A stretch of 64,000 nucleotides of DNA from Podarcis bocagei (GCA_964188305.1 OZ076885.1); one strand, 5' to 3'; positions 1,055-25,883 are shown, counted from the stretch's first letter. Program-made: numbers and translations. Notes: generated by a model not told the origin, from the sequence alone.

Positions 1055-2179
1055 TCAAGAAAAAAGTAACAGGTAAATTTATCTAACAATTTATAAGTGA
1101 TATGTACTGTGGTTTTCACACCTGCATGATGAAATTGAAGAGGAGGGTATCAAAGCCCAAATCTTTCCTAGGTTCAGGGGGCAGTGCTAACCTCAGCCAC
1201 TGCCTGGTGGGCCTTAACGATGATCAGGGCAGAATGTGGAGGACAGGCAGATTGCTGTGCCAGCCTGGAGCTGTTGCAGCAATCACACTCAATCCTGTCA
1301 CCTGACAGCAGCAGGGCTGACTTGGGATCCAATGGATCCAAAGGAGTTTTGGATTGTTTTACCTGGGATCTCATTTAAGACTTAAAAAAAGTGTGACTGT
1401 TGAATTGTGATTTATGCTCTATAGTGTTTTGGAACAGTCAAGCTATAATGTTTCTGTTTGGAGCTCTGGAATAAGGTCTGTTCATTCTGTTTTATAGATC
1501 TAGAGGATTGTGGAATACGGGGCAATCCCTTTAAAAAGTCTTTTCTCCCTTTGGCCTCCTGAACCCGTAAGGAGTATCTGGCAAACTATGTGATACAAAA
1601 GTTCATAGTCCTGTAGATATGTGACTCAACAAAATACAGGCCAGCTTCATGTACCAAGGATAATGTGAGGATAAATAAGATAACCCTTATAGGTTAACAC
1701 AAACTCAAATTAATCTGTATTACCAACATTTGTGGGCATGTCTCCATTCATATCAATAGAATTAGGTTTCCTCCAGATTGGTGTTTTATTGTGGGTGCAT
1801 TTTGCAACATATTTTTGATACAGTAATAATGCATTGGTGCTGAATTTATCCTGCTTTGGTTTGTTCTGTAATGCTTCCCCATTGCCACCACATTATTGCT
1901 GTTTGGAGGGGCTATAGCGCAACAAAAGTGGAGTGTGAGAGGAATAAAAAGTTATAAGATTTCAGCAGAAAGTAACGGGATATGCACTGATTGGAAGTGA
2001 AGCAGTGTGACTACCCCAAAGCTTTTGCAGATGCAAACAGTATTGAGAGCGGAATTGCGTGTGGCCACTCTGATAGCATCATGAGCACTATCAGCATGAA
2101 TTTGCAATAAAAAGACCATCTGGAGGGCCCCATAAATGTAAGTTTTTAAATGGGTAGTGGATTAAACATAAAGCAATAC

Positions 2180-2316
2180 CAGTGCAATTTTTCTAGAAAA
2201 AGAGGTGCCAGAACTCACCATGAATGCCTCTCTTATTCACTTATAATAGCAATGTTGCCCACCTGAGAGGTGCCGGAACTGGGTTCTGGCGAGTTGTGGC
2301 TGAAAAAAACACCCTG
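2180..2316. mobile_element. Short hAT-like MITE
   Basis: CAGTGCAATTTTT...AAAAAAACACCCTG termini; internal GAGGTGCC(A/G)GAACT repeats. Confidence 0.5.
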
Positions 2317-2375
2317 GCTCCAGCTTTCCTACGCATATTAACAGCATCACTACAATAGTGAGACCTTACACTTGC

Positions 2376-2458
2376 CTTTTTTCTTTTCCCCAAGGCATTT
2401 GGGCTTCTGAATCATTGAGCCAAGGTAAAGCAACATTTATGGCCAGGTCATAGTGAGC
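2376..2458 (-). CDS. C2orf80: C2orf80 coding exon 3 (AHYDLAINVALPWLNDSEAQMPWGKEK)
   Basis: tttag acceptor; matches human 'AHYDLAISVALQWLD'. Donor is either AG|gcaagt (exon ends 2376) or GT|gtaagg (ends 2370); both are phase 2. Confidence 0.85.
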
Positions 2459-2519
2459 CTAAAAGAGAAAAAAGTTTGTGTGTAATGTCAAACTACATGA
2501 TTTCTTTGCACAACAGCTT

Positions 2520-2726
2520 AAAGGTAAAGGTAAAGGGACCCCTGACCATTAGATCCAGTCATGACATGAGCTTCCAGGTCATGTGGCCAGCATCACTAAG
2601 CCGCTTCTGGCAAACCAGAGCAGCACACGGAAACACCGTTTACCTTCCCGCCGGAGTGGTACCTATTTATCTACTTGCACTTTGACGTGCTTTCGAACTG
2701 CTAGGTTGGCAGGAGCTGGGACCAAC
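2520..2726 (-). mobile_element. Sauria SINE, truncated and internally deleted
   Basis: (AAAGGT)n tail, GGGACCCCTGACC and GGTACCTATTTATCTACTTGCAC core. Confidence 0.9.
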
Positions 2727-3234
2727 AGCTTAGTGCAACTCAAATGTGTTACATGTGTGATGCTGACCCACAGGGTTTGGGTTGCTTTGGTCTACTTTTG
2801 GATTGCTTTGACCACCTGCTCTTGAAAAGAGAACTTAGCACAGGTCAAACATGTGTGCTGTTGACTCACAGGGTCTGTGTTATCTTTGGTTACGTTACAC
2901 AGCCTATCCTGCAAATAGAGTTCCCAATAGGCAGCACTGGTCGCTGCATGGATTCAGTGCATTTGTGCAAAAGTGTCCCAATATTCCAGGGACAGCCCCT
3001 AAATTATGAAAGCCATCCCAGCTTCTGATTTGATCCTGAAATGTCCTGATTTCCCCAGCCAGTGCTGCTGCTGAGCTCAGAGAGGAGGAGGAGCCTGTGT
3101 TTGTCCTGATAGACTGCAGCTGTGGCAGGGGTGGAGCATCTCGTTGTCTCTCCATGGCTGCCACTGCTGGCCTGCTCCCCCTAGGAGCAGAATTCCCTCA
3201 AAGAATTCTTTGAGGAGGAAAATGTGTTTTGAAT

Positions 3235-4064
3235 ATAGAATCATAGAATCATAGAGTTGGAAGAGACCACAAGGGCCATCGAGTCCAACCCCCTGCCAAG
3301 CAGGAAACACCATCAGAGCACTCCTGACATATGGTTGTCAAGCCTCTGCTTAAAGACCTCCAAAGAAGGAGACTCCACCACACTCCTTGGCAGCAAATTC
3401 CACTGTCGAACAGCTCTTACTGTCAGGAAGTGCTTCCTAATGTTTAGGTGGAATCTTCTTTCTTGTAGTTTGGATCCATTGCTCCGTGTCCGCTTCTCTG
3501 GAGCAGCAGAAAACAACCTTTCTCCCTCCTCTATGTGACATCCTTTTATATATTTGAACATGGCTATCATATCACCCCTTAACCTCCTCTTCTCCAGGCT
3601 AAACATGCCCAGCTCCCTTAGCCGTTCCTCATAAGGCATCGTTTCCAGGCCTTTGACCATTTTGGTTGCCCTCCTCTGGACACGTTCCAGTTTGTCAGTG
3701 TCCTTCTTGAACTGTGGTGCCCAGAACTGGACACAGTACTCCAGGTGAGGTCTGACCAGAGCAGAATACAGTGGCACTATTACTTCCCTTGATCTAGATG
3801 CTATACTCCTATTGATGCAGCCCAGAATTGCATTGGCTTTTTTAGCTGCTGCGTCACACTGTTGGCTCATGTCAAGTTTGTGGTCAACCAAGACTCCTAG
3901 ATCCTTTTCACATGTACTGCTCTCAAGCCAGGTGTCACCCATCTTGTATTTGTGCCTCTCATTTTTTTTGCCCAAGTGCAATACTTTACATTTCTCCCTG
4001 TTAAAATTCATCTTGTTTGTTTTTGCCCAGTTCTCTAATCTGTCAAGGTCGTTTTGAAGTGTGA
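3235..4064 (-). mobile_element. CR1 LINE 3' fragment (young; RT C-terminus open)
   Basis: ORF 3313-4113 contains '[18 protein letters not shown]' and 'RLRGDMI'; (ATTCTATG)n tail. Confidence 0.95.
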
Positions 4065-4902
4065 TATGTTTTAAGGGTAAAGTGTGCATGCAGCCAAAGC
4101 TGTAGTGCACCATGAAAGTATTTGTTTCCTGTACTCCTGACTCACTTCTGAATGGGAGATGCCACTTTTTGGCATGCTACAATTAAATGGCCACCTCTAC
4201 TGGTAGCTGTGTCCAATGAGCATGTCTGCCAGCAGCACAGAGCTGACACAATGAGCCAAAGGGTCCTTCTCCACATGCAAGGAAATTACATCCTTTATAC
4301 ATCATTCCTTAGTGGGGAAATAAAGTTTGTCTGATTGATAAAGACATTAGATTTGTTGTTGTTGTTGTTGTTGTTGATTTCATTTCTATACCGCTTTATA
4401 TTTTTAAGAAAAATCTCAAAGCTGATTACAAATATTAAAACATCAATAAAACAACCTGAAGGAAGTTAAATATAAAGTATACAGTCAAAGCAACATAATT
4501 AACAGAAAACTAAAACTAAAATGTTATCTTAAAGATTTCAAAATAAAACATTACAAAGGAGGACTACAGAATACATATTTAACACAAAGTTAACAAAAAA
4601 ACTTAAACATTTCAAAAAATAAATAAATAAGAAACATTGCTAAGTGAAGTCAAATACAAAATGCACATTTAAAACAGCAAAATTAACAAGAGAATAAAGT
4701 ATTATCATAGTTATTATGCATCACCTGGATTCTCCTTATTGCCTTATACTGAGTCAGTCAATTTCTAGCTCAGGATTGTCTACACCGAATGACTGTCTAC
4801 AATGCCCTTCCATACTGCTAGGCAGGGAGCACTCCCAGTCCTCCCTAGAGATGTCAGGGATTTAACCTGCGAGCGTCTGCATGCAAAACAGATGCTGTAC
4901 TA

Positions 4903-5088
<186 letters not shown>

Positions 5089-5237
5089 TCAGCCACTCAG
5101 TGCATTATTACTTGTGTGCGCTGGGGTGGGATAGGAAAGTGTGAGGTGCTATGCACATTGGGTATAAAATGCAGCTATTAGATATGAATCTACTTGAAAG
5201 TACAGTATATATAAAAAAGATAGAAGGTGGTACTTAC

Positions 5238-5278
5238 AAGAGTTTTTCAATCTCTTGTTTCAAACGTTTTCTCTCCAT
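5238..5278 (-). CDS. C2orf80: C2orf80 first coding exon (MERKRLKQEIEKLL)
   Basis: ATG at 5278, gtaagt donor, phase 2 joins the next exon. Matches human 'MERRLIKKEMKKLL'. Confidence 0.88.
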
Positions 5279-5373
5279 TAATTTGTGTGTTCTTTCTCCA
5301 CGTGCCAGTTGCAAAGGTCCAATAAGGTAAGAACTATGTACAATGAATGAACATAAGACATTAAGGATAGGTA

Positions 5374-11639: not shown

Positions 11640-12250
11640 CGCCTCACGGGCAGGCCGGCCCTCATCTCTGGGCAGAAGCTGCGCGGGTTTCCATGGCGAC
11701 GCAGCCCGCTCACCTGGAGGGAGTTAGGCCTCGCCCTTCCCTCACACGCGGGAGGAGGCAAGCAGGCCAAAGGGCTGCCGGAGGAACAGAGCGGCTCTTA
11801 AGAGCGCACAAACAACAACAACAACAACAACAACCTGTTTTTATTTATTTTGTTCCTTTTAAAATTTAGGACAGGAAACTCCTCAGCCCCTCAAGGAATT
11901 CTGGGCGTTGTAGTTCTTGGAAGGTGAAGGGGGCGGAGTCAACGCCGCGGCTGACAGAAGGGCCAATCCCGTCGCTCGGAGGGGATCACATGATAAAGTC
12001 CAAACCCAAACGCGGTTTTTGCTTATAGAAGGTGACAGAGGAATTAGAAGAAAGGAGAGGCGAGAGGAAGAGCGAGGGCGGACTTTCTTTATCCAGGGCA
12101 CTAAGGGGTTCGGGAACCCTAGCACATCTTTGTTGCTCTTGTTGTTTTCTTTCAAAATGAAGTTCTAACTACAGTCCCGCTTTTCGGAGGAGGCTGAGGC
12201 CGCTTGGAGGATTGAACTGGGTTATTTTTTTGAATGAAAGTGGTAAGTAT
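11640..12250. promoter_or_regulatory. CpG-rich, probably bidirectional promoter (SGO2-like plus, C2orf80 minus)
   Basis: X-box GTTTCCATGGCGAC 11687-11700; ZNF143-like ACTACAACGCCCAG (minus, ~11901-11914); GC box ~11930; CCAAT 11963; TTCAAA 12151 and TTTGAA 12229; donors CAG|gtgagc (minus, 11714) and GTG|gtaagt (plus, 12242). Confidence 0.7.
12160..12242 (+). other. Probable non-coding first exon of the SGO2-like gene (start approximate)
   Basis: Strong donor GTG|gtaagt at the CpG island edge. Confidence 0.55.
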
Positions 12251-12654
12251 GTTTTCCTTCTAATTTAATGGTTATGATTCGGGGGCGGGGGGGGGGATGT
12301 ATATATCTGCATGTACAACACCTTAGCCTTAAGTCCTTTGCTTCTCCAGCCACGTTTCTTTTGCTTAATTCTGTTTAAAAATGCACTTATTATTTATTAA
12401 ACGTATGGGGCAACCTTCACCCGAAGACCCCGAAGGGCAGTTCAAGACAGAAAAATACAGGATGGGGATACAAAACACATAAAACAGTTCTCTTGCTTTT
12501 TCTGTAACTTGTAAACTCTTAATAAATATCTTTTAAAAAAACCAAAAAACACATAAAACAGAAACAAGCCAGTAAACACTTTCACAAACACATTTCAAAA
12601 GCCGAATGCCTGGTTGAAGGGAAACATTTTTACCTGTCACATAAAGATATGTGG

Positions 12655-13485
12655 TTTGGGAGCTGCACGGTCAGGGAAGAAAACAGTGCTGTCCAGGGTT
12701 GTAAAGATGGCGGAGAGAATAATTGGGCGCACTCTTCCCACCTTGGATCAAATCTATGCTTCCAGGTACCATAAGAAAGCTGCAGAGATAGCGCAGGATA
12801 GTGCGTACCCCAGAAATGACCTCTTTCAGCTTCTGCCTTCTGGAAGAAGGTACAGGGTTAGAAAGACTAGGACTAGCCGCCTGAGAAACAGTTTCTATTC
12901 AAATGTGATTTTGGTTTTTAACGCAGTGTAAGGAGTCTCTGGGGGACGCGAGTGGCGCTGTGGGTTAAACCACAGAGCCTAGAACTTGCCGATCAGAAGG
13001 TCAGCGGTTCGAATCCCCGTGACAGGGTGAGCTCCCGTTGCTTGGTCCCTGCTCCTGCCAACAAAGTAGTTTGAAAGCACCTCAAAGTGCAAGTAGATAA
13101 ATAGGTACCGCTCCGGCGGGAAGGTAAACGGCGTTTCCGTGCGCTGCTCTGGTTCGCCAGAAGCGGCTTAGTCATGCTGGCCACATGACCTGGAAGCTGT
13201 ACGCCGGCTCCCTCGGCCAATAAAGCAAGATGAGCGCTGCAACCCCAGAGTCGGTCACGACTGGACCTAATGGTCAGGGGTCCCTTTACCCTTACCTTTT
13301 AAGGAGTCTCTATAGGAGTGTATTGTATTTTTAAAATGGGGTATCAGAGTTTTTAGGGGGCTAACCAGGCTGGGATAGCTGGGATAGCAGACTTGTTGGT
13401 TTTGAATATCTTATGTAGATTTTTTTTTTCAATTTCCTTGTTCCGTATGGGACAATGACAATAAAGATTATCGTATCGTATTGTA
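12655..13485 (+). mobile_element. Rex1/Babar LINE 3' fragment interrupted by a Sauria SINE
   Basis: 'RVVKMAERIIG...LFQLLPSGRRYR...RTSRLRNSF' motif; AATAAA plus short tandem tail at ~13460. Confidence 0.8.
12941..13299 (+). mobile_element. Sauria SINE, full length
   Basis: GGGACGCG..TGGCGCTG head, (ACCTTT)n tail, 12-bp TSD TAAGGAGTCTCT. Confidence 0.95.
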
Positions 13486-13771
13486 ACTTGTTTCACAGTA
13501 AGCATATACACTGGGCTGCAAAAGTATTCTGTCTCGGCATTGGTTTGCAAATGTGTGAACAAATCGCTTGATTTCTCTACACTTTTGTCTGGTCTATGCA
13601 ATGCATCCATGTGGTAGAGCAGAGGAAGTCCCTTCAGACTCCAAAGGGGCCTGGAGTATAAGTCAGTGCAAACATAAAAGCAATATAATGATGGTAGAGT
13701 ATTTTGCAAATATAAAGGATGATAATGGCAGACTTTTCTTTTTCTGAACAACTGGCAGGACTGCCTGAAAA

Positions 13772-13913
13772 ATGTCACTTCAGGCACTTGAAGAAACATC
13801 CATTTCCTTCACAAGTGAAGTCAGGGAACGGATGAAGGAAAAGAAAAATGGTGCATTGAAGACGGCAAAGCTGAATGCTTCTCTTGCATCAAAGATCAAA
13901 ACAAAAACAATAA
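13772..13913 (+). CDS. SGO2: SGO2-like coding exon 1 (MSLQALEE...[18 protein letters not shown])
   Basis: Acceptor at 13758, gtaagt donor; matches human SGO2 '[18 protein letters not shown]'. Confidence 0.9.
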
Positions 13914-14057
13914 GTAAGTGGCAGTATTTAAAGATAATTTGCTATGCTTGAGCTCTGGCGCTTCACTGGAGACCTGGACTATTCTATTGGGGTGAGTTAT
14001 AAGACAAGAGTTGCTGACCTTTTACAGCCTAAGTGAATGTGACTAAAGTGGTCATCA

Positions 14058-14480
14058 AACTATGGACTATATGGAATTGGCAGAAATGACTGGCAGAATC
14101 CGAGACCAGGGAGAAGAGTCGGTGGAAGAAGTCTGGAAGAAATTTAAAGACTATCTACAGAAATATTGTAAAATTAATGAATGATAGAATGATGTTGGAT
14201 AGCAACTAAGGGGTTTCCAGCTGTAATGATTTAAGGGAATATGAAAAAAGGGTTATAAATGGGTTAAAATCTAATGGTAAGGATTTGCTGAACCAATAAA
14301 TTGAAGTGGAATACAAAAAAGGGAGGTATGAGGAGGTCCGGGAAATAAGTTAAAAGAAAATAAGTAAAAGGAAAAATGTATGTTTTTAACTGTTTTTATT
14401 TTGTATTTTTCTTTTTTTCTTTTTCATTTTTACTGTTATATTTCAAAAAATTTTAATAAATATTTTATAAAAAAAATAAA
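14058..14480 (+). mobile_element. L1-like LINE 3' end, same family as 10167-11620
   Basis: Near-identical to 11215-11620; flanked by AAAGTGGTCATCAAACT direct repeats. Confidence 0.85.
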
Positions 14481-14520
14481 GTGGTCATCAAACTCATGCA
14501 TACATACTGCACTTACACAC

Positions 14521-14630
14521 AGAATCATAGAATTGTAGAGAGTCTAGTCCAACCCCCTGCAATTCAGGAATCTCAGCTAAAGCATCCATGACAGATGGCA
14601 ATCCAACTCCTGCTGAAAAACCTCCAACAG
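14521..14630 (-). mobile_element. Old CR1 3' end
   Basis: AGAATCATAGAATTGTAGAG tail and TCCAACCCCCTGC. Confidence 0.6.
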
Positions 14631-14638
14631 GTTGGCAC

Positions 14639-14682
<44 letters not shown>

Positions 14683-14857
14683 GCGCACACTCATCACTGT
14701 CAACAATGGGCTGAGGCGAGAGGTTTAAATCCATCACATGGCTGGGCTATGGGGCGATTTCCCCATCACAGAGCTGAGCTTGCATGCTGGAAAGGTTTAA
14801 TCTTCAACCGCAAGCACAGCCAATATAGGGCATTATCAGAACAAAAGCCTTATAGGA

Positions 14858-15116
14858 CCGTATTTTTTGCTCTATAAGACTCACTTTTTCCCTCCTAAAA
14901 AATAAGGGGAAATGTGTGTGCGTCTTATGGAGCGAATGCAGGCTGCACAGCTATCCCAGAAGCCAGAACAGCAAGAGGGATCGCTGCTTTCGCTGCACAA
15001 TGATTCCTCGTGCTGTTCTGGCTTCTGAGATTCAGAATATTTTTCTTCTTGTTTTCCTCCTCCAAAAACTAGGTGCATCTTGTGGTCTGGTGTGTCTTAT
15101 AGAGCGAAAAATACGG
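14858..15116. mobile_element. TcMar-Tc2-type MITE
   Basis: CCGTATTTTTTGCTCTATAAGAC...TCTTATAGAGCGAAAAATACGG TIRs. Confidence 0.85.
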
Positions 15117-15772
15117 TATTTCCCCCTACCTGTTCCGCACAGCAAAACCACAGATGGTGCAGCTTGAGTTGGTTATACAGATGGAGTGCTGTGTATTTGC
15201 ATGAGTCTGGTTTAGGGAATGCCAGCCTTGGTGTTGCTGCATATCCCTGCAATGTGGAGAAACACTAGGTTTCAGTAAATGGAGGGAGGAGGAGAGAAGA
15301 TGATAACCCAGCTGTTAGCAGGATTGGGGAAGATTTGACCACTCAAGAAAAATGGCACAGGAAGTGATTTATAAGTATCACCACTGCCCTTAGCTGTGTT
15401 TTCAGTCCCAGTGCAGTGGCATTTGACAGTTCTTTGGCATTTTTGTGTTCTCTGAAAAAGATGTATGATTTATGGCATAGGTCTTATGACTCTAAACAGC
15501 AGCATAATCATAGCAATTGAAACTGCATTTGTTCAACCTTGCCAAGCCACTGCTGATTGCCCAGGGGGAGACCAGTAAGAATTTGCTTCATAATACACAG
15601 CATAAGTCTGTGGTAGGGTACACAGGTTTCCTATGTTGATTGGAGCTCACCTACCAATTTTGGCTGCCGACTTCTGTTCTTGTCTTGATAAGGCAAAATT
15701 TTGGAAGGGGTTGGCCACTAAAGCTAACAAAAACCACCCATTTTCTCTCTCTCCCTCTTTTGAAAAATACAG

Positions 15773-15948
15773 ATAACTCCTCTATAATTAAGTTCTCCCT
15801 AAAACAGAACAACAAAGCGTTGGCTTTAGCTCTCAATGGTGCAAAGGGAGCTAGTCAAAGACTAACTGCTGAAAAGATGCTACTGCAAAAAGAAGTGGAA
15901 TCGTGTCACTTTGAAAATGCTTCACTGCGCCGAAAGCTCTTCTCTGTG
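15773..15948 (+). CDS. SGO2: SGO2-like coding exon 2, N-terminal coiled coil ([20 protein letters not shown]...[10 protein letters not shown]...[10 protein letters not shown])
   Basis: ag/gt sites, 176 nt; matches human 'NSSIFKISLKHNNRALAQAL...[16 protein letters not shown]'. Confidence 0.93.
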
Positions 15949-16064
15949 GTACGGTATTTGCAGCCATGTTATTTGTCTCTGCGGTAACTGGAACCTTTTC
16001 TTCAATGGTGCATAAACCAGGGGTAAAACTAGGCTTTATTTTACCCAGTTCAAAGACCCAGTTT

Positions 16065-16101
<37 letters not shown>

Positions 16102-16665
16102 CCATTAGCATTTTGGAAGGGTGTAACGAGGAATTGTGTGTCTTGAGTCACAGAAGGCTGGATTAGGGAACCTTGGTCAAGGGGATACACACATTGACAT
16201 GGCATATCCTACAAATACTTGATAAGGCCCATGAGAACCAAAGTCATAAGAAACAAGAGAGGCAAGTGTAGAGAAACAAATTTTGTTAAATTTTGGAAGC
16301 TCTTGTTACTAATTTATGGATTAAGATTCATGGATTAATTAATAGATCATGCATACTTTACAACACAGAGATAAAATCATATTTAAAACTATAAAAGAAC
16401 CCATGGGGAAATTATTAGGAATGTTATTTATGTTAATTTGTATACTGCCCCTCTTCCAAAGGTTTCAGGGCACTTCACAGCATTAAAATTCAAAATGAAA
16501 ACACAGAATTCATAATAAAAAGAGGAACATTATTCTAATTGCTTCTTTGAAAATACTGTAAAGAGTCTTTAACCTAAGCTTTCCAATGCTTATTAGGCCT
16601 GGTTTGCTTGTTTTTTATTTAAACTCGATAGGTTTAAAAATGTTAACCCTTTTGTTTGTATGCAG

Positions 16666-16792
16666 AACAAATCTATTCATGAACTGCACCAATATATGAA
16701 CAGCCACTTGCAAATAGCAATCAAGCTGAGCAGACCTCAGGATGAAGAGGATGACACTGCATTGGCACGTGATCGGGACACGCCTTTGGGTG
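16666..16792 (+). CDS. SGO2: SGO2-like coding exon 3 (NKSIHELHQYMNSHLQIAIKLSRPQDEEDD...)
   Basis: tgcag acceptor; similar to human 'NKKLIDIEALMNNNLITAIEMS'. Donor at 16789 or 16792, both phase 1. Confidence 0.75.
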
Positions 16793-17265
16793 GTATAATA
16801 GAGCTTTTATCATATAATTACTTCTACTTTGGCTGTATGCGGCAGATATCTGGCAGGCAACCCCAATAACCTTCAAACATCTCTTGAAAACCTTTTTATA
16901 TGCTGACAAATCTATTTGTTGAATTTCTTTTTAGGTGAGCCACTCATTCTTGTGATGATTCTCTATTTTATGATTTTTATTTTGTGCACCTCCTTGATAT
17001 GTTATGTGAGTGGGCGGGATATAAATACTTCCATAAATTAAACATAGCACCCTCTGTATGAGTGAGAGACACATGTTAACTGGAAAGCCATATACTTGGG
17101 ATGGCCACATCTGTGGTCTTGGGAGTAAGCCTACTCAGTGGGATTTACTTCTGAGTAACCATGTATAAGATCAGGCTGCAATTTATTAATTGCCTGAGCT
17201 TATGTGGCACTGAGGTTGTCTCTTCCGTCTAACTACAGATGTGGTACAGAATCATTTGAGGACTA

Positions 17266-18377
17266 CCGTATTTTTCGCCCTATAAGATGCACTTTTTCCG
17301 CTCCAAAAATGAAGGGGAAATGTGTGTGTGTCCTATGGGGCGAATGCAGGCTTTCCCTGAAGCCTGGAGAGCGAGAGGGGTCCGTGCGCACCGATGCCTC
17401 TCGCTCTCCAGGCTTCAGGAAGCTATCCCAAGTCTTGCAAGCCCGGCGGGATGTCCCGCGGGCTCGCAAGGCTTGCGGGCAGCAGCCTGCACCCAAAAGC
17501 TGGGGACAGCGGGGAGGCGCAGAGCCGCCACCCCGCTATTCCCCGACCTGAACTGGAGGCTGGCGGGGGGAGAAGCAAGCCTGCTTCTCCCCCACACCAG
17601 CCCCACAAGCTCGCGGGATAGGGGGATGGCGAAGCCCCGCCATCCCCCTATTCCCCGACCTGATCTGGAGGCTGGGGGTGGGAGAAGCAAGCTTGCTTCT
17701 CCCCCCCCCCCCAGCCCCACAAGCTCGGGGGATAGGGGGATGGCGAAGCGCCGCCATCCCGCTATTCCCCGACCTGATCTGGAGGCTGGGGGTGGGAGAA
17801 GCAAGCCTGCTTCTCCCCCCCGCCAGCCCCACAACCTCCAGATCAGGTCGGGGAATAGCGGGATGGCAGCGCTCCGCCATCCCCCTATTCCCCGACCTGA
17901 TCTGGAGGCTGGCGGGGGGGAGAAGCAAGCCTGCTTCTCCCCCCCCCCGCCAGCCCCACAAGCTCGGGGGATAGGGGGATGGCGGAGTGCCGCCATCCCG
18001 CTATTCCCTGACCTGATCTGGAGGCTGGCGGGGGGAGAAGCAATCCTGCTTCTCCCCCCGCCAGCCCCACAAGCTGGGGGATAGTGGGCCAAGCTGTCCC
18101 TGAAGGCAGAAGAGGGAGACGGAGCACTCCATCTCCCTCTTCTAGCTTGGGATGGTTGCGCAAAGCCTCTGCTGGGCAGCGCAGTGCGCTGCCCCACAGA
18201 GGCTTGGGAGGCTGTCCCTGAAGGCAGAAGAGGGAGACGAAGTGCTCCGTCTCCCTCTTCTAGCTTGGGGATGGCTGCGCAAACCTGGGGGGAAATCAAT
18301 TTTTTTCCTTTGATTTCCCCCCTCAAAAAATAGGTGCGTCCTATGGGCCGGTGCGTCTTATAGGGCGAAAAATACGG
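17266..18377. mobile_element. TcMar-Tc2-type non-autonomous element with internal ~120-bp repeats
   Basis: TA|CCGTATTTTTCGCCCTATAAGA...TCTTATAGGGCGAAAAATACGG|TA. Confidence 0.9.
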
Positions 18378-19295
18378 TATTTCCAGTTACTCCTGGCTCA
18401 ACCTGACACTGGAACGTACTTTGCAGTGCAAGATGGGAATCTGCGTCTTATGTATTTATTTACTGTGCCGTTGGGTGCTGGCAGTATACCAGTCAGGAAT
18501 GCACAATTCTGTTCCTTTTCAGTACTGGGCAATAGGTTCAGTGTGCATCATGCTTAATTATTCTCTTACAATCCTGTGAGCATTTGGGGGAAGAAATAAG
18601 AGCCAAATCTCTATAACCTTGTCTTTAGGGTTTGTTTAGTCCCAAGTGATGGTCCTTTAACTTAAGTCAGTTGTGGGCTGTGGATAAGGAATGGCAAGCA
18701 CATTTGGCCAAGACTATATCGTGGAGGTCTGGATGGAACCCCACCTATTGCATCAGACTGTGAGTGTTACACTCAATGTAGGCAACATTGAAAGGCATAG
18801 CTTTGCCTGTCTTCAGTACCAAATACCATTTTTCCTAAGCAGGCACTTTTTTTTTCTGATGAGGGCTGTGTTCCCACGAGGGAATTACATGTCAGCTGGC
18901 AGAAGATCTGAGTGGGGACAGAGTAGAAAGTAGGCAGGGCTGCTTCCCCCCTTTTCTCTTTCTGCTGCCACCTTCCTTCTTCTCACTCCCCCTTCATGCA
19001 ATGGGAGCCACAGCTTGTTTTGCCTGAGGTTTCATCAGATTGCTTGCAGTGGGCTTTTGGAGTTAGGTCTAGAATTGTATAAAAGAATGCCTTGCTGTTT
19101 GACGTGTGCTTTAAAGAACAGCAAAGACTTCGTGCCCGATCTAAGTGCCATTTGATGGTTGCCACCAAAAAGCTTTTGTAATTACAGAATGGGCATAGAT
19201 GTCAACACACACACACACAATTAGAAACAATTTTATGCACGCTTATGTGGGTTAGAAAGCTGGCTTGTTGAAGCTAACTAGATTCACCACTAACT

Positions 19296-19543
19296 GCAGC
19301 CAGTGTGGTGTAGTGGTTAGAAGCGATAGACTCGTAATCTGGGGAACCGGGTTCGCGTCCCCGCTCCTCCACATGCAGCTGCTGGGTGACCTTGGGCTAG
19401 TCACACTTCTCTGAAGTCTCTCAGCCCCACTCACCTCACAGAGTGTTTGTTGTGGGGGAGGAAGGGAAAGGAGAATGTTGGCAGCTTTGAGACTCCCTAG
19501 GGTAGTGATAAAGCGGGATATCAAATCCAAACTCCTCTTCTTC
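19296..19543 (+). mobile_element. tRNA-derived CORE-type SINE (Squam3-like)
   Basis: A box TGGTGTAGTGG, B box GGTTCGCGTCC, GGGTGACCTTGGGC core, (CTT)n tail; near-identical inverse copy at 28469. Confidence 0.85.
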
Positions 19544-19865
19544 TAACTACAGTTTCCGGTTCAGACAACATGGGACGCCACAATTAACTGAAAATGGAAA
19601 CAAATGCTTCTGAACTCCTTGGTTGTGCAAGGGAAATGAAAAATGCATGAGTCCAGGAAGCGGCTAGGCTCATTTGCATACTAAACATTGCCATTGTTTA
19701 GTATAATGTCTGAATATTAATTGTGGGGCATGGCGCACAATGTGAAGTGGGGGGGAGGGTTGTGGCTTTAAAGCCCTATTTGTGGGCTTCCTGGAAGCAT
19801 CTGCCTGGTCTCTGTTGGAAATGAGATGGGCCCTTGGTTTGACTGAGAACTACTTTTCTTGCTTT

Positions 19866-20047
19866 CTTAGATAGATATCTTTATTGTCATTGTCCCATGC
19901 AGAACAATGAAATTGAAAAACTACATAAAACTACATAAAAACTACATAAAACTACTGCAGAACTACATAAAACATTCAAAAACCCCTAAGAACTCTAAAA
20001 CCCCATTTTAAAATACACTATACTATAGAGACCCCTTATGCTGCGTT
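19866..20047 (-). mobile_element. Rex/Babar-like 3' UTR fragment with (AAAACTACAT)n
   Basis: Reverse complement resembles 13312-13480 (GGGACAATGACAATAAAGAT). Confidence 0.6.
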
Positions 20048-20137
20048 TATTGCACAAGCTTAATGGAATGTTCATGGATTCTTTAAAAAAAAGCAAGTTT
20101 GTGTTCACCTACTAAATTCAGCTATTTGTCATTGTAG

Positions 20138-22261
20138 GAAACCTTTTGAGAACACAACAATGTCCCAGGAGCGGCTTGCTGTCTGTCCTGAATAATAGTT
20201 CACCTCTGCAGCACTGTGAGGTGACTACGGCACCACTCATTGGTAGCGTGTTGTTATCAGGTGGTCACGTGACTCAGAGGAAGAAACGCAGAATAAGCTC
20301 ATCAGCTGCATCTGGAGGTGATTCTCAAAAGAAGTCCTCAGAGATGCTTCAGTGGACAAAGGAATCGGAGCAGGCTGTTAAAGAGTATTTTGAAGTCGGT
20401 CAGGTTGGTGAGCTTTTGGCACCAGACACCAATGATAAAAGCTGTGAGACGATCAAAGCCAATGAAACCACAGCTGTAAAAAAAGTGAGTATGGGGAATG
20501 TGCACAGGAGGTCTTCTGCTGTCAGGCAGTCCAAAGGACATTTGGTTAATTATAACAGTGGAATAAGGAATACTTTTGTGGTAGTACCATACAAAACCTC
20601 TGAATCGAACAGTAGCGCGATGACAATTCCGGAACCTGCACGTCACACTGAAGAGTCAAGTCAAGTCGATTCTCTGGAAGAAAGACCACCACTGAACATC
20701 TGCAGTCAGAAGGAGGCGGATAGTACCCAGCCCCGTGATAAAGGCAGAGGTTGCAGATTGACATATGTAGTGCACCAGACTATTCCAAAGCAGGTAGATG
20801 ACTGCAACACTTTGACTCAGGAAATTGAAAAAAGAACATTCTTGGGAAAAATGAAGAATTCAGAAAGTCAGTTCCAAAATCCAGATACTATCTCATTAAG
20901 CAATAAACTACAAGATAAAAAGAGCCATGCCTGCAATGTGAAACATACTTCCCAGTGTTCTGAGAAAACCAGGGATTGCAGAAGGACCTATGTAGTGGAC
21001 CAGACTTCTCTAAGCAATGTAGATGACAGCAATGCTTTGACTCAGGGAATTGAAAAAAGAACATTCTTGGAAAAAATGAAGAATTTAGAAAGTCAATTCC
21101 AAAATCCAGATACTATTTCATTAAGCAATGTGAAACATACTTCCCAGTGTTCTGAGAAAACCAGGGATTGCAGAAGGACCTATGTAGTGGACCAGACTTC
21201 TCTAAGCAATGTAGATGACAGCAATGCTTTGACTCAGGAAATTGAAAAAAGAACATTCTTGGGGAAAATGAAGAATTCAGAAAGCCAGTTCCAAAATCCA
21301 GATACTATCTCATTAAGCAATAAACTACAAGATAAAAAGAACCATGCCTGCAATGTGAAACATGCTTCCCAGGGTTCTGATAAAACCAGGAGTTGTAGAA
21401 GGACCTCTGTGTTAGAGCTAGGCCCTTTAGATTATCAGAACAATTCTGCTCCCCTTGCACATGAAGGAAATGCACCCTCAGAAAACTTAGAGGATCGAGG
21501 AATTGTGTTCCGAAGTCCGGAGCTTAGTTTGTTAAGCAACAAGGCACCACTGCATGCTCTTGGTACAAAACAGTTGGTTGGTTTCCAAAAGCAGATTCCT
21601 GGCAAAGAAGCAACACTGGATCTGAATGTGAAGCATAAAAAACCCAAGAAGGCAACCCAGGAAATTTGTTTACAACAGGAGATCAGTGAGATGGAGCTAC
21701 AGAGCTTCAGTGTTGATGTGCAGCCTCAAGAAACCAAGGCTAAAGAAGGGCACAAACACAAAACAGTTAAAGCGGGGAAGGATAATGCAGGGAAAGAACA
21801 TGGGGAAACAGACACGGGTCTGAGTGCTCAAGGAGCCAATAAAAGGAAGAGGAAGAATTTGAGTTTCACTTCTCAATCGACAAGTCAAGCAGATGCAACC
21901 CCTGTTTTCTCTCTAGGGAATGTGCATTCCGCATTTCGAGGTTCAGGTTCCAGGACTCAGCAAGATTCTTTCCATAGGGATCTTCCTAAGGCTTCGCCTC
22001 AGGCTGATTCTATGGCTGTATGTCCCAAAACTCCTGAGTCTTCCGCAGTTGGTCTTTCTAAGACCACCTTACCGCATTCTTGTAGTTCTGTTCAGTCACA
22101 TTCTGCACTTCAAGATCAAGTGAGCCCAGAAAGAAACTCGTCTCTGCCCAAAGTCTCAACAGCTTTAAAAAATGATTCAAAGCAAGTGGCTTCTGGCAGA
22201 TGTGAGAAAAAGACAGCACATGCAATTCCTGAAACCTTGCAAAACACAGCACAAGGAAAAG
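20138..22261 (+). CDS. SGO2: SGO2-like large central exon (708 codons)
   Basis: 2124-nt open exon, tgtag acceptor, gtgagt donor, phase 1-1; 'VTQRKKR' corresponds to human 'VTERKKR'; R-x-T-[FY]-V motifs. Confidence 0.88.
20752..21420 (+). repeat. In-frame coding tandem repeat, units of 225, 192 and 225 nt
   Basis: Unit starts at 20752, 20977, 21169 and 21394 (fourth unit degenerate). Confidence 0.92.
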
Positions 22262-23117
22262 GTGAGTGATGAAAAGGGGCTGTTGATAGGAGGTTCAATA
22301 GGTGAATTGCGGTGGGGTGCGTGAAGCCCTCCATCTAAATCTTGACATTCACCTCTTTCTGTGTGCATATCTGTGCACTCCTATTGGGTTTGCTTGATTT
22401 AAGCTAACCTGAAGATCTGGTTTTCTCCCCCAACCAGCCCAGAGCTTTTATTGCTCTGCACCTAAAATGAAAGCTAGACTGCAGTATAGTGGCAGCTCAC
22501 TGTGAGAAAGCTCAGGAAAGCAAAAGGCCTATGGTCAGATGGAGGTTTGTCCCATACATGTACTAGACATTTGCCAATGCAAAAAGTGAAGAAACAGATG
22601 GTTTTTTTACTTGTTTTCTTCACTGTGACTGGAGGGGGATGGGAGTCCAGCTAAGAAACACAATAGCTGCTTTGTGCTCCCTTACAATATCCACAAATTG
22701 CCCAAAGCCAAGAATCAAAGATGCGAGTAAAGGATAGTGTGCTGGTTTTATCTCCTGCCTCTTAACCTTGTGTGAATTATTACTATTAGGTATTAAGGGC
22801 ATGTCCACAAAGGAACTTCCTTTGCTGCTGTGCTTCTGCTTTAGTGGAAGAAGAGAAGTATAGGAAGGAATATTTATGTTAAAGAGGTGCCCTGAAATCC
22901 AGAGATGTTTTGCACAAGTTGCATGTGTGAATCTCTGAATGATACCTTGTCTGGGAAATAAACCTGCACCTTTGGGAACAGGAGAACATTAGTAACCACT
23001 TGCTGTTGGGAACCATGTGGAATTTAAACTACTGCTTTTGAAATAAAACCCAATTTGGTAGCCAAGCAGGCCTAACATTGAATTCTCAATTGACTCTGCA
23101 TGTTCAGAGTTTAGAAA

Positions 23118-23462
23118 TGCAGGTGGTGCTGTGGTCTAAATCACTGAGCCCAGGGCTTGCCGATCAGGTCAGCGGTTCGAATTCCTGTGAAGGGGTGAGC
23201 TCCCGTTGCTCTGTCCCTGCTCCTGCCAACCTAGCAGTTCGAAAGCACGTCAAAGTGCAAGTAGATAAATAGGTACCGCTCTGGCGGGAAGGTAAACGGC
23301 ATTTCCGTGTGCTGCTCTGGTTCACCAGAAGCGGCTTAGTCATGCTGGCCACATGACCTGGAAGCTGTACACTGGCTCCCTCGGCCAATAAAGTGAGATA
23401 AGCGCCACAACCCCAGAGTCGTCTGCGACTGAACTTAACGGTCAGGGGTCCTTTACCTTTAC
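23118..23462 (+). mobile_element. Sauria SINE
   Basis: Same body as 12941-13299. Confidence 0.92.
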
Positions 23463-23542
23463 TCTGAGTTTATTTATTTTTAATAGGTTTAAAGTTAGGC
23501 TCAGTGTAGCTTAAGCAGTGATCAATTCCTGACTCTTCACAG

Positions 23543-23651
23543 AGAACAAGGTCCTGCAAGATTCAACCAATTCTGTACCTCTGGAATCACCTCCAACACG
23601 GCCAAGAAGACAGACAAAAGAAGTTCGCTATGCACTGCCCAAGATTAACAC
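23543..23651 (+). CDS. SGO2: SGO2-like exon, first half of SGO motif (ENKVLQDSTN...PRRQTKEVRYALPKINT)
   Basis: cacag acceptor, gttagt donor; 'LQDSTN' corresponds to 'LQDLSN'. Confidence 0.85.
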
Positions 23652-23842
23652 GTTAGTATTCTGTTTGATGCCGAGTGCCCTTTTATAAGAGAGGGAGTCG
23701 AAATATAGATCATGGGAATCCTGTGCTGTCTGTGGCCTGAAACCTTGACTGTCTTGCTGCGGGTGCTGTTTCCCGGAATATAAAAATCAAAAACAGTCTG
23801 TGTACAACAAATTATATTGCTTCTCTCTCTTCTCTGCTGCAG

Positions 23843-23954
23843 CAAACTGAGGAGCGGTGACCCATTTACATTTTCTATCTACCCCGGGTCCCCTGTGTAC
23901 AACACTAAAAGAAAGAAGTTGACCAGAGGATCTGGAAAGTCCAAGGAAACCTAA
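23843..23954 (+). CDS. SGO2: SGO2-like last exon (KLRSGDPFT...KET*)
   Basis: Polypyrimidine-cag acceptor; KLRxGDPF shugoshin motif; TAA 23952-23954; AATAAA 24086-24091. Confidence 0.85.
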
Positions 23955-25144
23955 AAAGAGGAAATCGACTGTTGCAAATTCACGGTTTTTAGTAGGAAAC
24001 AAGTGTGTTACTGTTTAAAAAAACTTTGGGGTCTCCAGTATTCCCCCTTACCTAGTCTTTTTTGTTCTGGTATTTGCATTTCAGAAATAAAACATTTCCA
24101 CCTGAAGTTCAATTGGATGTTTGAAAGCCTGTCAGAATTCCAGGAATGTAGAACGTTTAACATTTTATTGAGTTGTAGATCATCTGACTATTAGCTTGCA
24201 TGAAAGTGTCAAAGCTGAGTTCCAGGGAAGACCTGACCCCATTTAAATGCTGCTTAGGCCGTGCACTAGATCTGCAAGTTACCCAGCTATCCTACACCTG
24301 TTCCACGTTCAAGGATTATTTTGTAAATTGAACTACAGTTTACCAGTTGTCTCCTTACAATTCATAAACAAGTTGACACATAGGGATGGATATTAGTAGT
24401 TTATTTATGCCAAATATCCCCCGTAAAAAGAATAGGAGCCATGGATGGGACAATGTTTAATGAGAATAAAAGATAATGTTCAAATGGTTGAAAATAGTCT
24501 GAGAAACTGCACCATTAACCTATCTGAAAGGAAATAAAATACACCTGGCCTAAACACAGGAGTAAATCATTCCTGCACTTCAACTTGGGTACTATACATA
24601 AGAAAAGGACTGCATTTGTCTAAGTCTTGCCCTATTGAACTGTGGCAAATACTCACAACTCTAACATTAGTAGAATCCTCTTACAATCCTGCCAACATGA
24701 GGCTTTACAGGGCACTTCTAACCATGTCTGTTCAGAAGCAAAGCCTACTGAACTCATTGGGCCTACTCTCAGGCAACTGAGGTTAGGATTGCAGCCTTTG
24801 TCCAATTTCACTAGGTCTTTAAATCTTGCAGTGCTTTACGTACTCCAGTAAAGGCCCAGCAGCTAGCTAGAAAACAAAACCTATTCCATTATTTAAATCA
24901 TTCACTGTAGAGCTCATCTCCACCCCCAGTAAGGTCTGTCACTGTGGGTTTTGGTTGGCAAGAAGGCTAACAGCTTAATTCACAGAGGCAGCCATCTAGC
25001 CTGCCCTGTGTGCCTTTTTACAAAAAAACAAAATCTGACAATGTAGACATATTTCCCCCCCCTCCCCAAGTGCTATACTACACAACAGTGCGATTCATTC
25101 ATGTGGCAGGCGACCTTTCCGGAGCAATTCTTGAGGCCTGTTCC

Positions 25145-25238
25145 TTAAAGTCTTGGCTGGGAAGAGAGCTTTGCCTTTAGGTTTTCAGCAAGTTTATCCA
25201 TGAAGTCAAATGTGTTCAAGTAGTCAGAGCGCGTCACA
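25145..25238 (-). CDS. IDH1: IDH1 last coding exon (VTRSDYLNTFDFMDKLAENLKAKLSSQPRL*)
   Basis: ctcag acceptor, TAA at 25147-25145. Confidence 0.95.
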
Positions 25239-25883
25239 CTGAGATGAAGAAAGAAAACCGTAAATGTTACGGTAGTATGAGATTTAAAATTGATCTTAAA
25301 CATTAGCTAGTTTTGCAGGTTTGTGTCAGTCAGGAGCAGCGTGGCACAAACTTTGGCTGTTCTATACACACGCAAGAAATGTTCTGACATTGTTTTATGC
25401 CATCTGATTTTTTTCTCATTCTTGGGTGGGGTGAATCTCGATCCACTCCTTTCCACCCCTCAATCTAGTATCTCAAGGCTTCCTTTCCTTTGGTTAAGAA
25501 GAAAAAACATTGGGGGGGGGGTCATTCCTTTCTCAAAAACCTACATTTATAGGCATGAGAATGTATTTTAGATGCACGTTCCCTAAACTTGGGCCTGTGT
25601 GGCGACTTTGGCATGAAATACAGAATAAGAGCTTTCACAATTTGGCAGAAGAAGGATTAGCTGCTACGACCCTGGCAAAGAATGACTTAAAACACTGCAG
25701 TCATATTTTACTGGAGACCCGAGTAGTTCTGCTTTCAGTTATTGTAATTGCCCGTCTTTGGGATGCAATTCAGGTCTATGCTACAATGAACACCAAACAA
25801 GCAGTTTAGTGTTTTTTAATTGTACAAATTCTACCATTATGTAGTAACAAAATTCCTTTTCCTAATGGGCTGAGTTTACTCAC

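Follow-up and report, generated by a model that had tools for sequence, protein, structure and literature searches.

This work concerns a shugoshin gene of the wall lizard Podarcis bocagei, carried by a stretch of 64,000 nucleotides (GCA_964188305.1 OZ076885.1; one strand, 5' to 3') which is called the window hereafter. Vertebrates are commonly considered to possess two shugoshins, SGO1 and SGO2. The gene found in the window is a paralogue of SGO2, designated SGO2L in this text. It is located downstream of C2orf80 and tail-to-tail with IDH1, its reading frame is intact, its transcript is spliced and its coding sequence is under purifying selection. It is best understood as the lacertid orthologue of an old shugoshin-2 paralogue which originated from a DNA-level duplication some megabases away from SGO2, on its chromosome, and has kept a fixed C2orf80 - SGO2L - IDH1 position, a reading to which a probability of roughly 0.85 can be given.

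The existence of two distinct loci is the central piece of evidence. A search performed with the first 150 residues of a turtle homologue retrieved two SGO2-type proteins in many sauropsid species. The flanking genes can be summarized as follows, DUF5563 being the family of C2orf80 and Iso_dh that of IDH1.

Podarcis lilfordi: DUF5563 - gene - Iso_dh on the IDH1 side.
Lacerta agilis: DUF5563 - gene - Iso_dh on the IDH1 side; canonical gene as KCTD18 - gene - AOX, 4.06 Mb away on the same chromosome.
Candoia (snake): gene - Iso_dh on the IDH1 side; canonical gene beside KCTD18, 4.1 Mb away on the same chromosome.
Pangshura (turtle): gene - Iso_dh on the IDH1 side.
Chiroxiphia (bird): DUF5563 - gene - Iso_dh on the IDH1 side; canonical gene as KCTD18 - gene - AOX, 2.8 Mb away on the same chromosome.

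The IDH1-side flanks examined in Candoia and Pangshura end short of C2orf80. Annotated shugoshin 2 proteins separate from SGO2L are also available for Zootoca and Podarcis muralis, and within lacertids the SGO2L and SGO2 proteins display an identity of 29% only. Among birds, SGO2L is found in galliforms as well (quail, ptarmigan). Outside the lacertid SGO2L genes, a layout of eight coding exons is common to SGO2 and SGO2L in turtle, bird, snake and lizard; the duplication therefore took place at the DNA level, with introns kept.

These results modify an earlier interpretation made from the window alone, the sequence-only reading, in which the gene was presented as a possible extra squamate shugoshin. 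It is indeed extra, SGO2 being separately located at KCTD18/AOX, but it is not restricted to squamates, as it occurs in bird, turtle, crocodilians, tuatara and probably opossum. The same reading had hesitated between a relocated SGO2 and an intron-retaining duplicate: relocation is discarded by the occupation of the same interval across sauropsids, and the duplicate is retained on account of the common eight-exon layout. The separate SGO2 that it suggested looking for at the KCTD18/AOX1 locus is present in Lacerta agilis, Candoia (on the KCTD18 side) and Chiroxiphia. An ordinary orthologue had been expected to lie beside IDH1 in most sauropsids, which is true, and to be the only SGO2 in the genome, which is false. 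Found on the IDH1 side in sauropsids and yet not their sole SGO2, the gene is therefore an old paralogue and can be regarded neither as the usual orthologue nor as an invention of lizards.

The age of the duplication was addressed by phylogeny. In a first maximum-likelihood (ML) tree, computed on the alignable N- and C-terminal parts with an amphibian root, the 27 IDH1-side proteins form a single clade (support 99/97) whose sister group unites mammalian SGO2 with canonical sauropsid SGO2 (98/88). A HMMER search using the turtle protein as query yielded 264 relatives at 50% clustering, the unnamed ones being placed on a tree. A tuatara fragment and the genes of Anolis carolinensis and Hemicordylus were thus found to belong to the SGO2L clade, which includes crocodilian proteins too, as was, more surprisingly, a 'shugoshin 2-like' protein of the opossum Monodelphis domestica (XP_056662972), separate from opossum SGO2. 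A second ML tree, rooted on sharks and with coelacanth, lungfish, paddlefish and frog as further outgroups, recovered the amniote proteins together (96/93) with amphibians outside, canonical SGO2 with mammals (99/94) and SGO2L with the opossum gene (96/81). In BLAST comparisons, the 12 best matches of the latter are all SGO2L proteins, and the SGO2 of its own species does not appear within the top 40.

Discrete characters follow the same partition. A KEN box and a head of the type IKR[RH]V are derived states of canonical SGO2 and mammals. The ancestral [VI]RERMKEK head, present in coelacanth and amphibians, is retained by SGO2L and the opossum gene, in which, moreover, a basic residue replaces the Glu that all others have in AIEMS. 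That the duplication came before mammals and sauropsids separated, and that eutherians later lost the copy, is accordingly considered probable.

A sauropsid-specific duplication is the most serious alternative to this early date, although an unlikely one. The opossum gene would then be an independent, fast-evolving marsupial duplicate drawn to SGO2L by long-branch attraction, and no mammalian loss would have occurred. Three results speak for it and against the early date: the branch of the opossum protein is very long (0.95), and approximately unbiased (AU) tests reject neither a sauropsid-only duplication, with sauropsid SGO2 and SGO2L in one clade (p = 0.087), nor the grouping of the opossum gene with mammalian SGO2 (p = 0.21). 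However, both ML trees join sauropsid SGO2 with mammals, and the second joins the opossum gene with SGO2L, at the support values given above. The KEN box and IKR[RH]V head common to canonical SGO2 and mammals, the basic residue common to SGO2L and the opossum gene, and the best matches of the latter also argue for duplication before the split.

Two other members of the SGO2L clade were recorded. The 'shugoshin 2' of the gecko Sphaerodactylus townsendi (CM037627.2:5870943-5900029) falls in this clade on a long branch, and its gene is flanked by ATMIN (ASCIZ zinc fingers) and CENPN and is away from IDH1, possibly as a result of a relocation in geckos or of an assembly issue. In the softshell turtle Pelodiscus sinensis, two different SGO2L-type proteins are annotated (LOC102449629 and LOC142830212) on contigs that differ in length; the pair reflects either two assemblies or one more recent duplication.

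The structure of the P. bocagei gene was rebuilt from the sequence. Six coding exons on the plus strand (13772-23954) are bounded by AG acceptors and GT donors in all introns, with consistent phases, and the coding sequence of 2790 nt is translated into 929 aa with no internal stop and a TAA stop codon; the window contains no run of N. The uninterrupted protein of about 929 aa and the six phase-consistent exons of the sequence-only reading were thus reproduced to the residue, and the end that it gave, 24091, coincides with the last letter of a polyadenylation signal. The relevant features are listed below.

1925-5373, minus strand: region collinear with the DUF5563 (C2orf80 family) gene of P. 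lilfordi and Lacerta agilis.
12160-12243, plus strand: possible non-coding first exon (5' untranslated region), with a GTG|GTAAGT donor at 12243; a candidate from sequence only.
13772-13913, plus strand: coding exon 1, aa 1-47, with the ATG and the conserved head; 99% identity to locus L001.
15773-15948, plus strand: coding exon 2, aa 48-106, core of the putative PP2A-binding coiled coil, from the alignment.
16666-16792, plus strand: coding exon 3, aa 107-148, with AIKLS in place of the AIEMS of SGO2.
16793-20137, plus strand: intron standing where two small exons are found in other genes, these coding for about 120 aa with the MAD2-interaction block.
20138-22261, plus strand: large coding exon, aa 149-856.
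20755-21414, plus strand: repeated modules of 64-75 aa, each with R-[RL]-T-[YS]-V-[VL] (aa 355, 430, 494 and 569).
23543-23651, plus strand: coding exon 5, aa 857-892, encoding an LQDSTN box as well as the beginning of the SGO motif (RPRRQTKEVRYALPKIN).
23843-23954, plus strand: coding exon 6, aa 893-929 and stop, with a KLRSGDPFT tail.
24086-24091, plus strand: AATAAA polyadenylation signal.
25148-25303, minus strand: last coding exon of IDH1, tail-to-tail with SGO2L; phmmer against PDB matches residues 385-411 of cytoplasmic isocitrate dehydrogenase (E = 1e-7).

The neighbours named by the sequence-only reading were recovered, IDH1 through the PDB match of its exon and C2orf80 through collinearity with the DUF5563 loci. 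The candidate first exon begins at 12160, which is also the start proposed by the sequence-only reading, and its region displays a CpG observed/expected ratio of 0.69 across 11701-12400. The large exon is 88-90% identical to the proteins of Podarcis muralis and P. lilfordi. The junctions of the first exons agree with those of the RefSeq models of Podarcis, Zootoca and Lacerta, and the first three coding junctions are based on these concordant models of three lacertids, not on reads.

On present evidence the lizard gene is alive. An intact open reading frame (ORF) is found in three lacertids (929 aa in the window, 854 aa in P. lilfordi and 875 aa in Lacerta agilis using the six-exon reading), and all indels are in frame among the lacertids compared. 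Nei-Gojobori omega, the ratio of non-synonymous to synonymous rates, amounts to 0.53, 0.55 and 0.50 for the three lacertid pairs, and to 0.32-0.40 against Lacerta in the coiled coil and C-terminus; the synonymous excess gives binomial p values from 4e-4 to 2e-5 for omega < 1. The synonymous divergence between the window and P. lilfordi is 0.05. The ratio of about 0.5 is significantly below 1 and not near it, a value close to 1 having been proposed beforehand as the mark of a decaying copy. Spliced reads had been called for as well, and here the outcome is divided: contigs of one sequencing run, X5, contain the joints 22262|23541 and 23651|23843 (GT..AG), matching the predicted junctions, and almost no reads fall on SGO2L in the bulk runs X23 and X24. 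One contig of run X5 begins at the exon-5 acceptor (20137, before the large exon) and carries 49 further upstream letters which do not match the intron. Run X1 was set aside as transcript support: it is DNA-like and its contigs cross exon-intron borders. The RefSeq model of Lacerta agilis (LOC117058902, 599 aa) is mis-spliced and truncated; the six-exon reading restores the ORF of 875 aa.

A number of points weigh against this reading of the P. bocagei gene. A separate SGO2 is documented by the loci and annotated proteins of other species, not by the KCTD18/AOX locus of P. bocagei itself. Run X5 is only a guessed RNA run, from a relative diverged by about 1-3%, with a depth of 3-4. Runs X23 and X24 bear the label of the species with no tissue stated, and the few reads of X24 are in an orientation that could result from IDH1 read-through. 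Among lacertids, SGO2L changes at roughly double the pace of SGO2 (84-86% versus 92-94% amino acid identity). In the SGO motif of lacertid SGO2L, Leu (Y-A-L-P) takes the place of the Glu of Y-x-E-P, which is invariant among all the other SGO2-type sequences aligned, and KLRR has become KLRS in both the window and P. lilfordi, so that docking on chromatin could be weakened. Finally, binding of PP2A, of H2A-pT120 and of MCAK is predicted from conserved residues only.

Decay of lacertid SGO2L toward a pseudogene has to be considered in this light. The gene has lost two exons, Podarcis alone lacks another 105 aa, the SGO motif no longer has its conserved Glu, the sequence evolves faster than that of the paralogue and two bulk RNA runs cover it very thinly. 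Such a process is nevertheless quite improbable, as the indels are all in frame, an ORF of 854-929 codons is intact in three genera, omega is significantly below 1 and lower still in the coiled coil and C-terminus, and spliced transcripts exist in run X5. A single, ordinary SGO2 orthologue whose IDH1-side position would merely be unlike that of mammals could account for this position in lizards, snake, turtle and bird and for the SGO2-type N-terminus, but it is scarcely tenable in general and already refuted for Lacerta agilis, given the second gene at KCTD18/AOX in lacertid, snake and bird that groups with mammalian SGO2, the distinct shugoshin 2 annotated in Podarcis muralis and Zootoca, and the 29% identity of the two proteins. 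Equally hard to sustain, and in fact refuted by the synteny of non-squamates, is a recent squamate- or lacertid-specific duplicate with a new role, suggested by the long branch of the lacertid copies (0.33-0.41) and by their lineage-specific exon loss, in view of the orthologues at the same syntenic position in turtle and bird and of a clade which takes in crocodilians and tuatara and mirrors the species tree.

The SGO2L protein displays the expected shugoshin elements at both ends. In mouse Sgol2, the residues in contact with PP2A are L51, N54, N55, R56 and E82 (PMC3816256); in the alignment these correspond to L57, N60, N61, K62 and E88 of SGO2L, Lys at the position of R56 being found in all the non-mammalian SGO2-type proteins aligned. 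The coiled-coil stretch continues to ...LLQKEVE. Pfam searches conducted on single-exon translations returned no shugoshin domain, Shugoshin_N included, because both short domains are split across exons. On complete proteins, Shugoshin_C (PF07557) scores 27.4 bits in the P. lilfordi orthologue, for a cut-off of 23.3, and 30.0 bits in Zootoca, and over this stretch the window differs from P. lilfordi by one residue (R for C). The SGO2-type coiled coil and C-terminal SGO motif announced by the sequence-only reading are consequently both borne out, the first by alignment of the N-terminus with SGO2 coiled coils and the second through the P. lilfordi orthologue. In this part of the window (23599-23651 and 23843-23861), Y-A-E-P is the state to compare with: it is usual in the SGO2L of turtle, squamates and some birds as well as in salamander SGO2, and only the Glu-to-Leu change is specific to lacertids.

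The central part of the protein is more variable. Tandem Repeats Finder reports a unit of 192 bp in the module region (2.0 copies, 96%). The R-R-T-Y-V-V module occurs in three copies and a degenerate fourth in the window, 2+1 copies in P. lilfordi and Zootoca and 1+1 in Lacerta; an in-frame difference of 417 nt is observed in this region in run X5, and the P. lilfordi protein is 75 aa shorter. The R-[RK]-T-[YE]-[VI]-[VI] sites of SGO2L display the motif of the eutherian N-R-K-T-E-I-I repeats, whose phosphorylation by Aurora-B (human T537/T620, mouse T521/T600) recruits MCAK (PMC3816256). Another segment of the large exon (314 nt, 105 aa) is missing in frame from the window and P. lilfordi, with a deletion point at 21942-21945, and is present in Lacerta, Zootoca, Rhineura, a skink, snakes and iguanians. 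The KEN box is absent from the whole SGO2L clade and the window has AIKLS at the AIEMS position; both the KEN box and the Glu of the separase-pseudosubstrate region have been described for SGO2 (PMC12017502).

The most conspicuous peculiarity of the lacertid gene is the loss of two exons. In all the other SGO2 and SGO2L genes examined, two small exons (about 37 and 88 aa) are located between the coiled-coil exons and the large exon. Both are absent from lacertid SGO2L, which has six coding exons instead of eight and whose coding exon 3 is longer by about 16 codons via a new donor. A tblastn search for relics, using five SGO2L proteins against positions 12000-24500, found nothing with E < 0.3 in the 3.3-kb intron. 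According to the alignment, the lost part includes a block R..P-M-[RK]-[VI]-P..DD. In mouse Sgol2, the motif that interacts with MAD2 has been mapped and is centred on H150 (PMC3816256), and this residue lies within the block in a sequence of the mouse lineage (Mus caroli). The distribution of the block is as follows.

Amphibian SGO2: present in four of the five sampled.
Mammalian SGO2: block present.
Turtle, crocodilian and bird canonical SGO2: block present, with one exception.
Turtle, crocodilian, bird and non-lacertid squamate SGO2L: block present, save in two models that are probably incomplete.
Squamate canonical SGO2: block absent from each one sampled.
SGO2L of lacertids: block absent.

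In non-lacertid squamates the block is carried by the SGO2L copy only. With the block missing from squamate SGO2 and from lacertid SGO2L alike, wall lizards seem to be devoid of any shugoshin bearing a recognisable MAD2 block, as judged from motif alignments. The missing exons and block are a derived loss within the SGO2L group and no ground for excluding the lacertid gene from it. The losses of conserved motifs mentioned in the sequence-only reading were thereby confirmed from motif alignments and exon maps.

The beginning of the large exon (20140-20166, aa 150-158) carries an N-L-L-R-T-[QP]-[QR]-C-P stretch found in lacertids only; elsewhere in SGO2L the homologous segment is devoid of Pro. 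The MAD2-binding motifs of Cdc20 and Mad1 (x-psi-psi-R-x-x-x-x-P) have a spacing that N-L-L-R-T-x-x-C-P fits. Speculatively, this stretch at the new exon junction could be a replacement MAD2-binding site. A wider scenario can be sketched, tentatively and with more doubt than any date proposed above: ancestral amniotes would have had three shugoshins (SGO1, SGO2 and SGO2L), and eutherians would have lost SGO2L, its jobs passing into one SGO2. Squamates would have split these jobs, SGO2 losing the MAD2 block and SGO2L keeping it, and lacertids would have it in neither, the coupling being given up or rebuilt at the new junction.

On the basis of its conserved residues, SGO2L may be pictured as a centromeric shugoshin adaptor in three parts. 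The N-terminal parallel coiled coil, with its PP2A-contact residues, would recruit PP2A-B56, and the basic C-terminal SGO motif would dock on H2A phosphorylated by Bub1. The repeated R-R-T-Y-V-V modules would correspond to the N-R-K-T-E-I-I sites of Aurora-B through which MCAK is recruited in eutherians. Since the SGO2L clade lacks the KEN box and the pseudosubstrate Glu, and the lacertid copy the MAD2 block as well, lacertid SGO2L would be expected to ensure cohesin protection and microtubule regulation while uncoupled from MAD2, from separase and from KEN-dependent turnover by the anaphase-promoting complex/cyclosome. SGO2L and SGO2 would then represent a split of jobs that are united in the single eutherian SGO2.

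Several repeated sequences in the introns of the gene were also noted. A GC-rich tandem array (17502-18088; unit of 114 bp, about 5 copies, 85% alike) is included in an intron insertion of about 1.1 kb which is absent from P. lilfordi, and it generates long spurious ORFs on both strands. Interspersed repeats are located at 19344-19687 and 23128-23471, the second with a tRNA-like GGTTCGAATCC box. All four runs cover both of them very deeply, and many of the reads continue into unrelated sequence; these repeats are dispersed, transcribed elements resembling short interspersed elements and no part of SGO2L.

SGO2L models, produced by automatic annotation, are already included in RefSeq and UniProt under names that vary from shugoshin 2, shugoshin 2-like or shugoshin 1-like to uncharacterized. 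Full-text literature searches found no paper on a third vertebrate shugoshin paralogue, on its IDH1-side synteny or on its distribution, and a 2016 survey of eukaryotic shugoshins mentions neither birds nor reptiles. The name 'SGO2L' does appear in a Cell 2024 paper, where it merely designates an antibody against SGOL2. The gene is therefore listed in databases, and its status as a distinct paralogue is new as far as the searched literature shows.

In mouse and human, a single SGO2 protein protects cohesin through PP2A, recruits MCAK and binds MAD2, with silencing of the checkpoint and inhibition of separase. In avian or reptile systems, knock-outs of SGO2 or antibodies directed against it may consequently hit only half of the activity. 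The SGO2/SGO2L pair constitutes a natural separation-of-function experiment, in which the KEN box, the pseudosubstrate Glu and the MAD2 block are divided differently between copies and lineages. Because database names are inconsistent, anyone who compares rapidly evolving centromere proteins on the basis of orthology will be misled. What was first put forward as a squamate novelty becomes an ancient amniote paralogue affected by a lacertid-specific exon loss.

Comparison with known genes places SGO2L as follows. The RefSeq models named 'shugoshin 2-like' or 'uncharacterized LOC' in P. lilfordi, Alligator, Chiroxiphia and Candoia, and probably that of Monodelphis domestica, are orthologues of the window gene, with the same synteny wherever checked and 84-96% identity within lacertids; outside lacertids, members still have both small exons together with the MAD2 block. 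SGO1 shares the shugoshin architecture and, in some cases, a KLRRGDPFT-type tail behind the SGO motif. However, the SGO1 proteins of lungfish and coelacanth, which are shorter (about 600-860 aa), have a head of the type IKERMKEKR..K.AKV and form a separate long-branched group, distant from the window protein; the latter has neither this head nor a place in this clade. The mouse possesses a second SGO2-type gene, Sgo2b, beside the main one, and all rodent SGO2 sequences sampled fall inside the canonical mammalian clade. The closest known system is canonical vertebrate SGO2 (SGOL2/Tripin; mouse Sgol2/Sgo2a), which has in common with SGO2L the N-terminal coiled coil with PP2A-contact residues, an extended, disordered central region in which R-[RK]-T-x-[VI]-[VI] sites of the Aurora-B type recur, an LQDLTN box followed by the C-terminal SGO motif, the layout of eight coding exons (for non-lacertid SGO2L) and a location on the same chromosome, 3-4 Mb apart. 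SGO2L differs from it by its position at C2orf80/IDH1 instead of KCTD18/AOX, by its separate clade, by the absence of a KEN box and by Lys or Arg at the AIEMS Glu, the lacertid copy being further distinguished by the absence of the MAD2 block.

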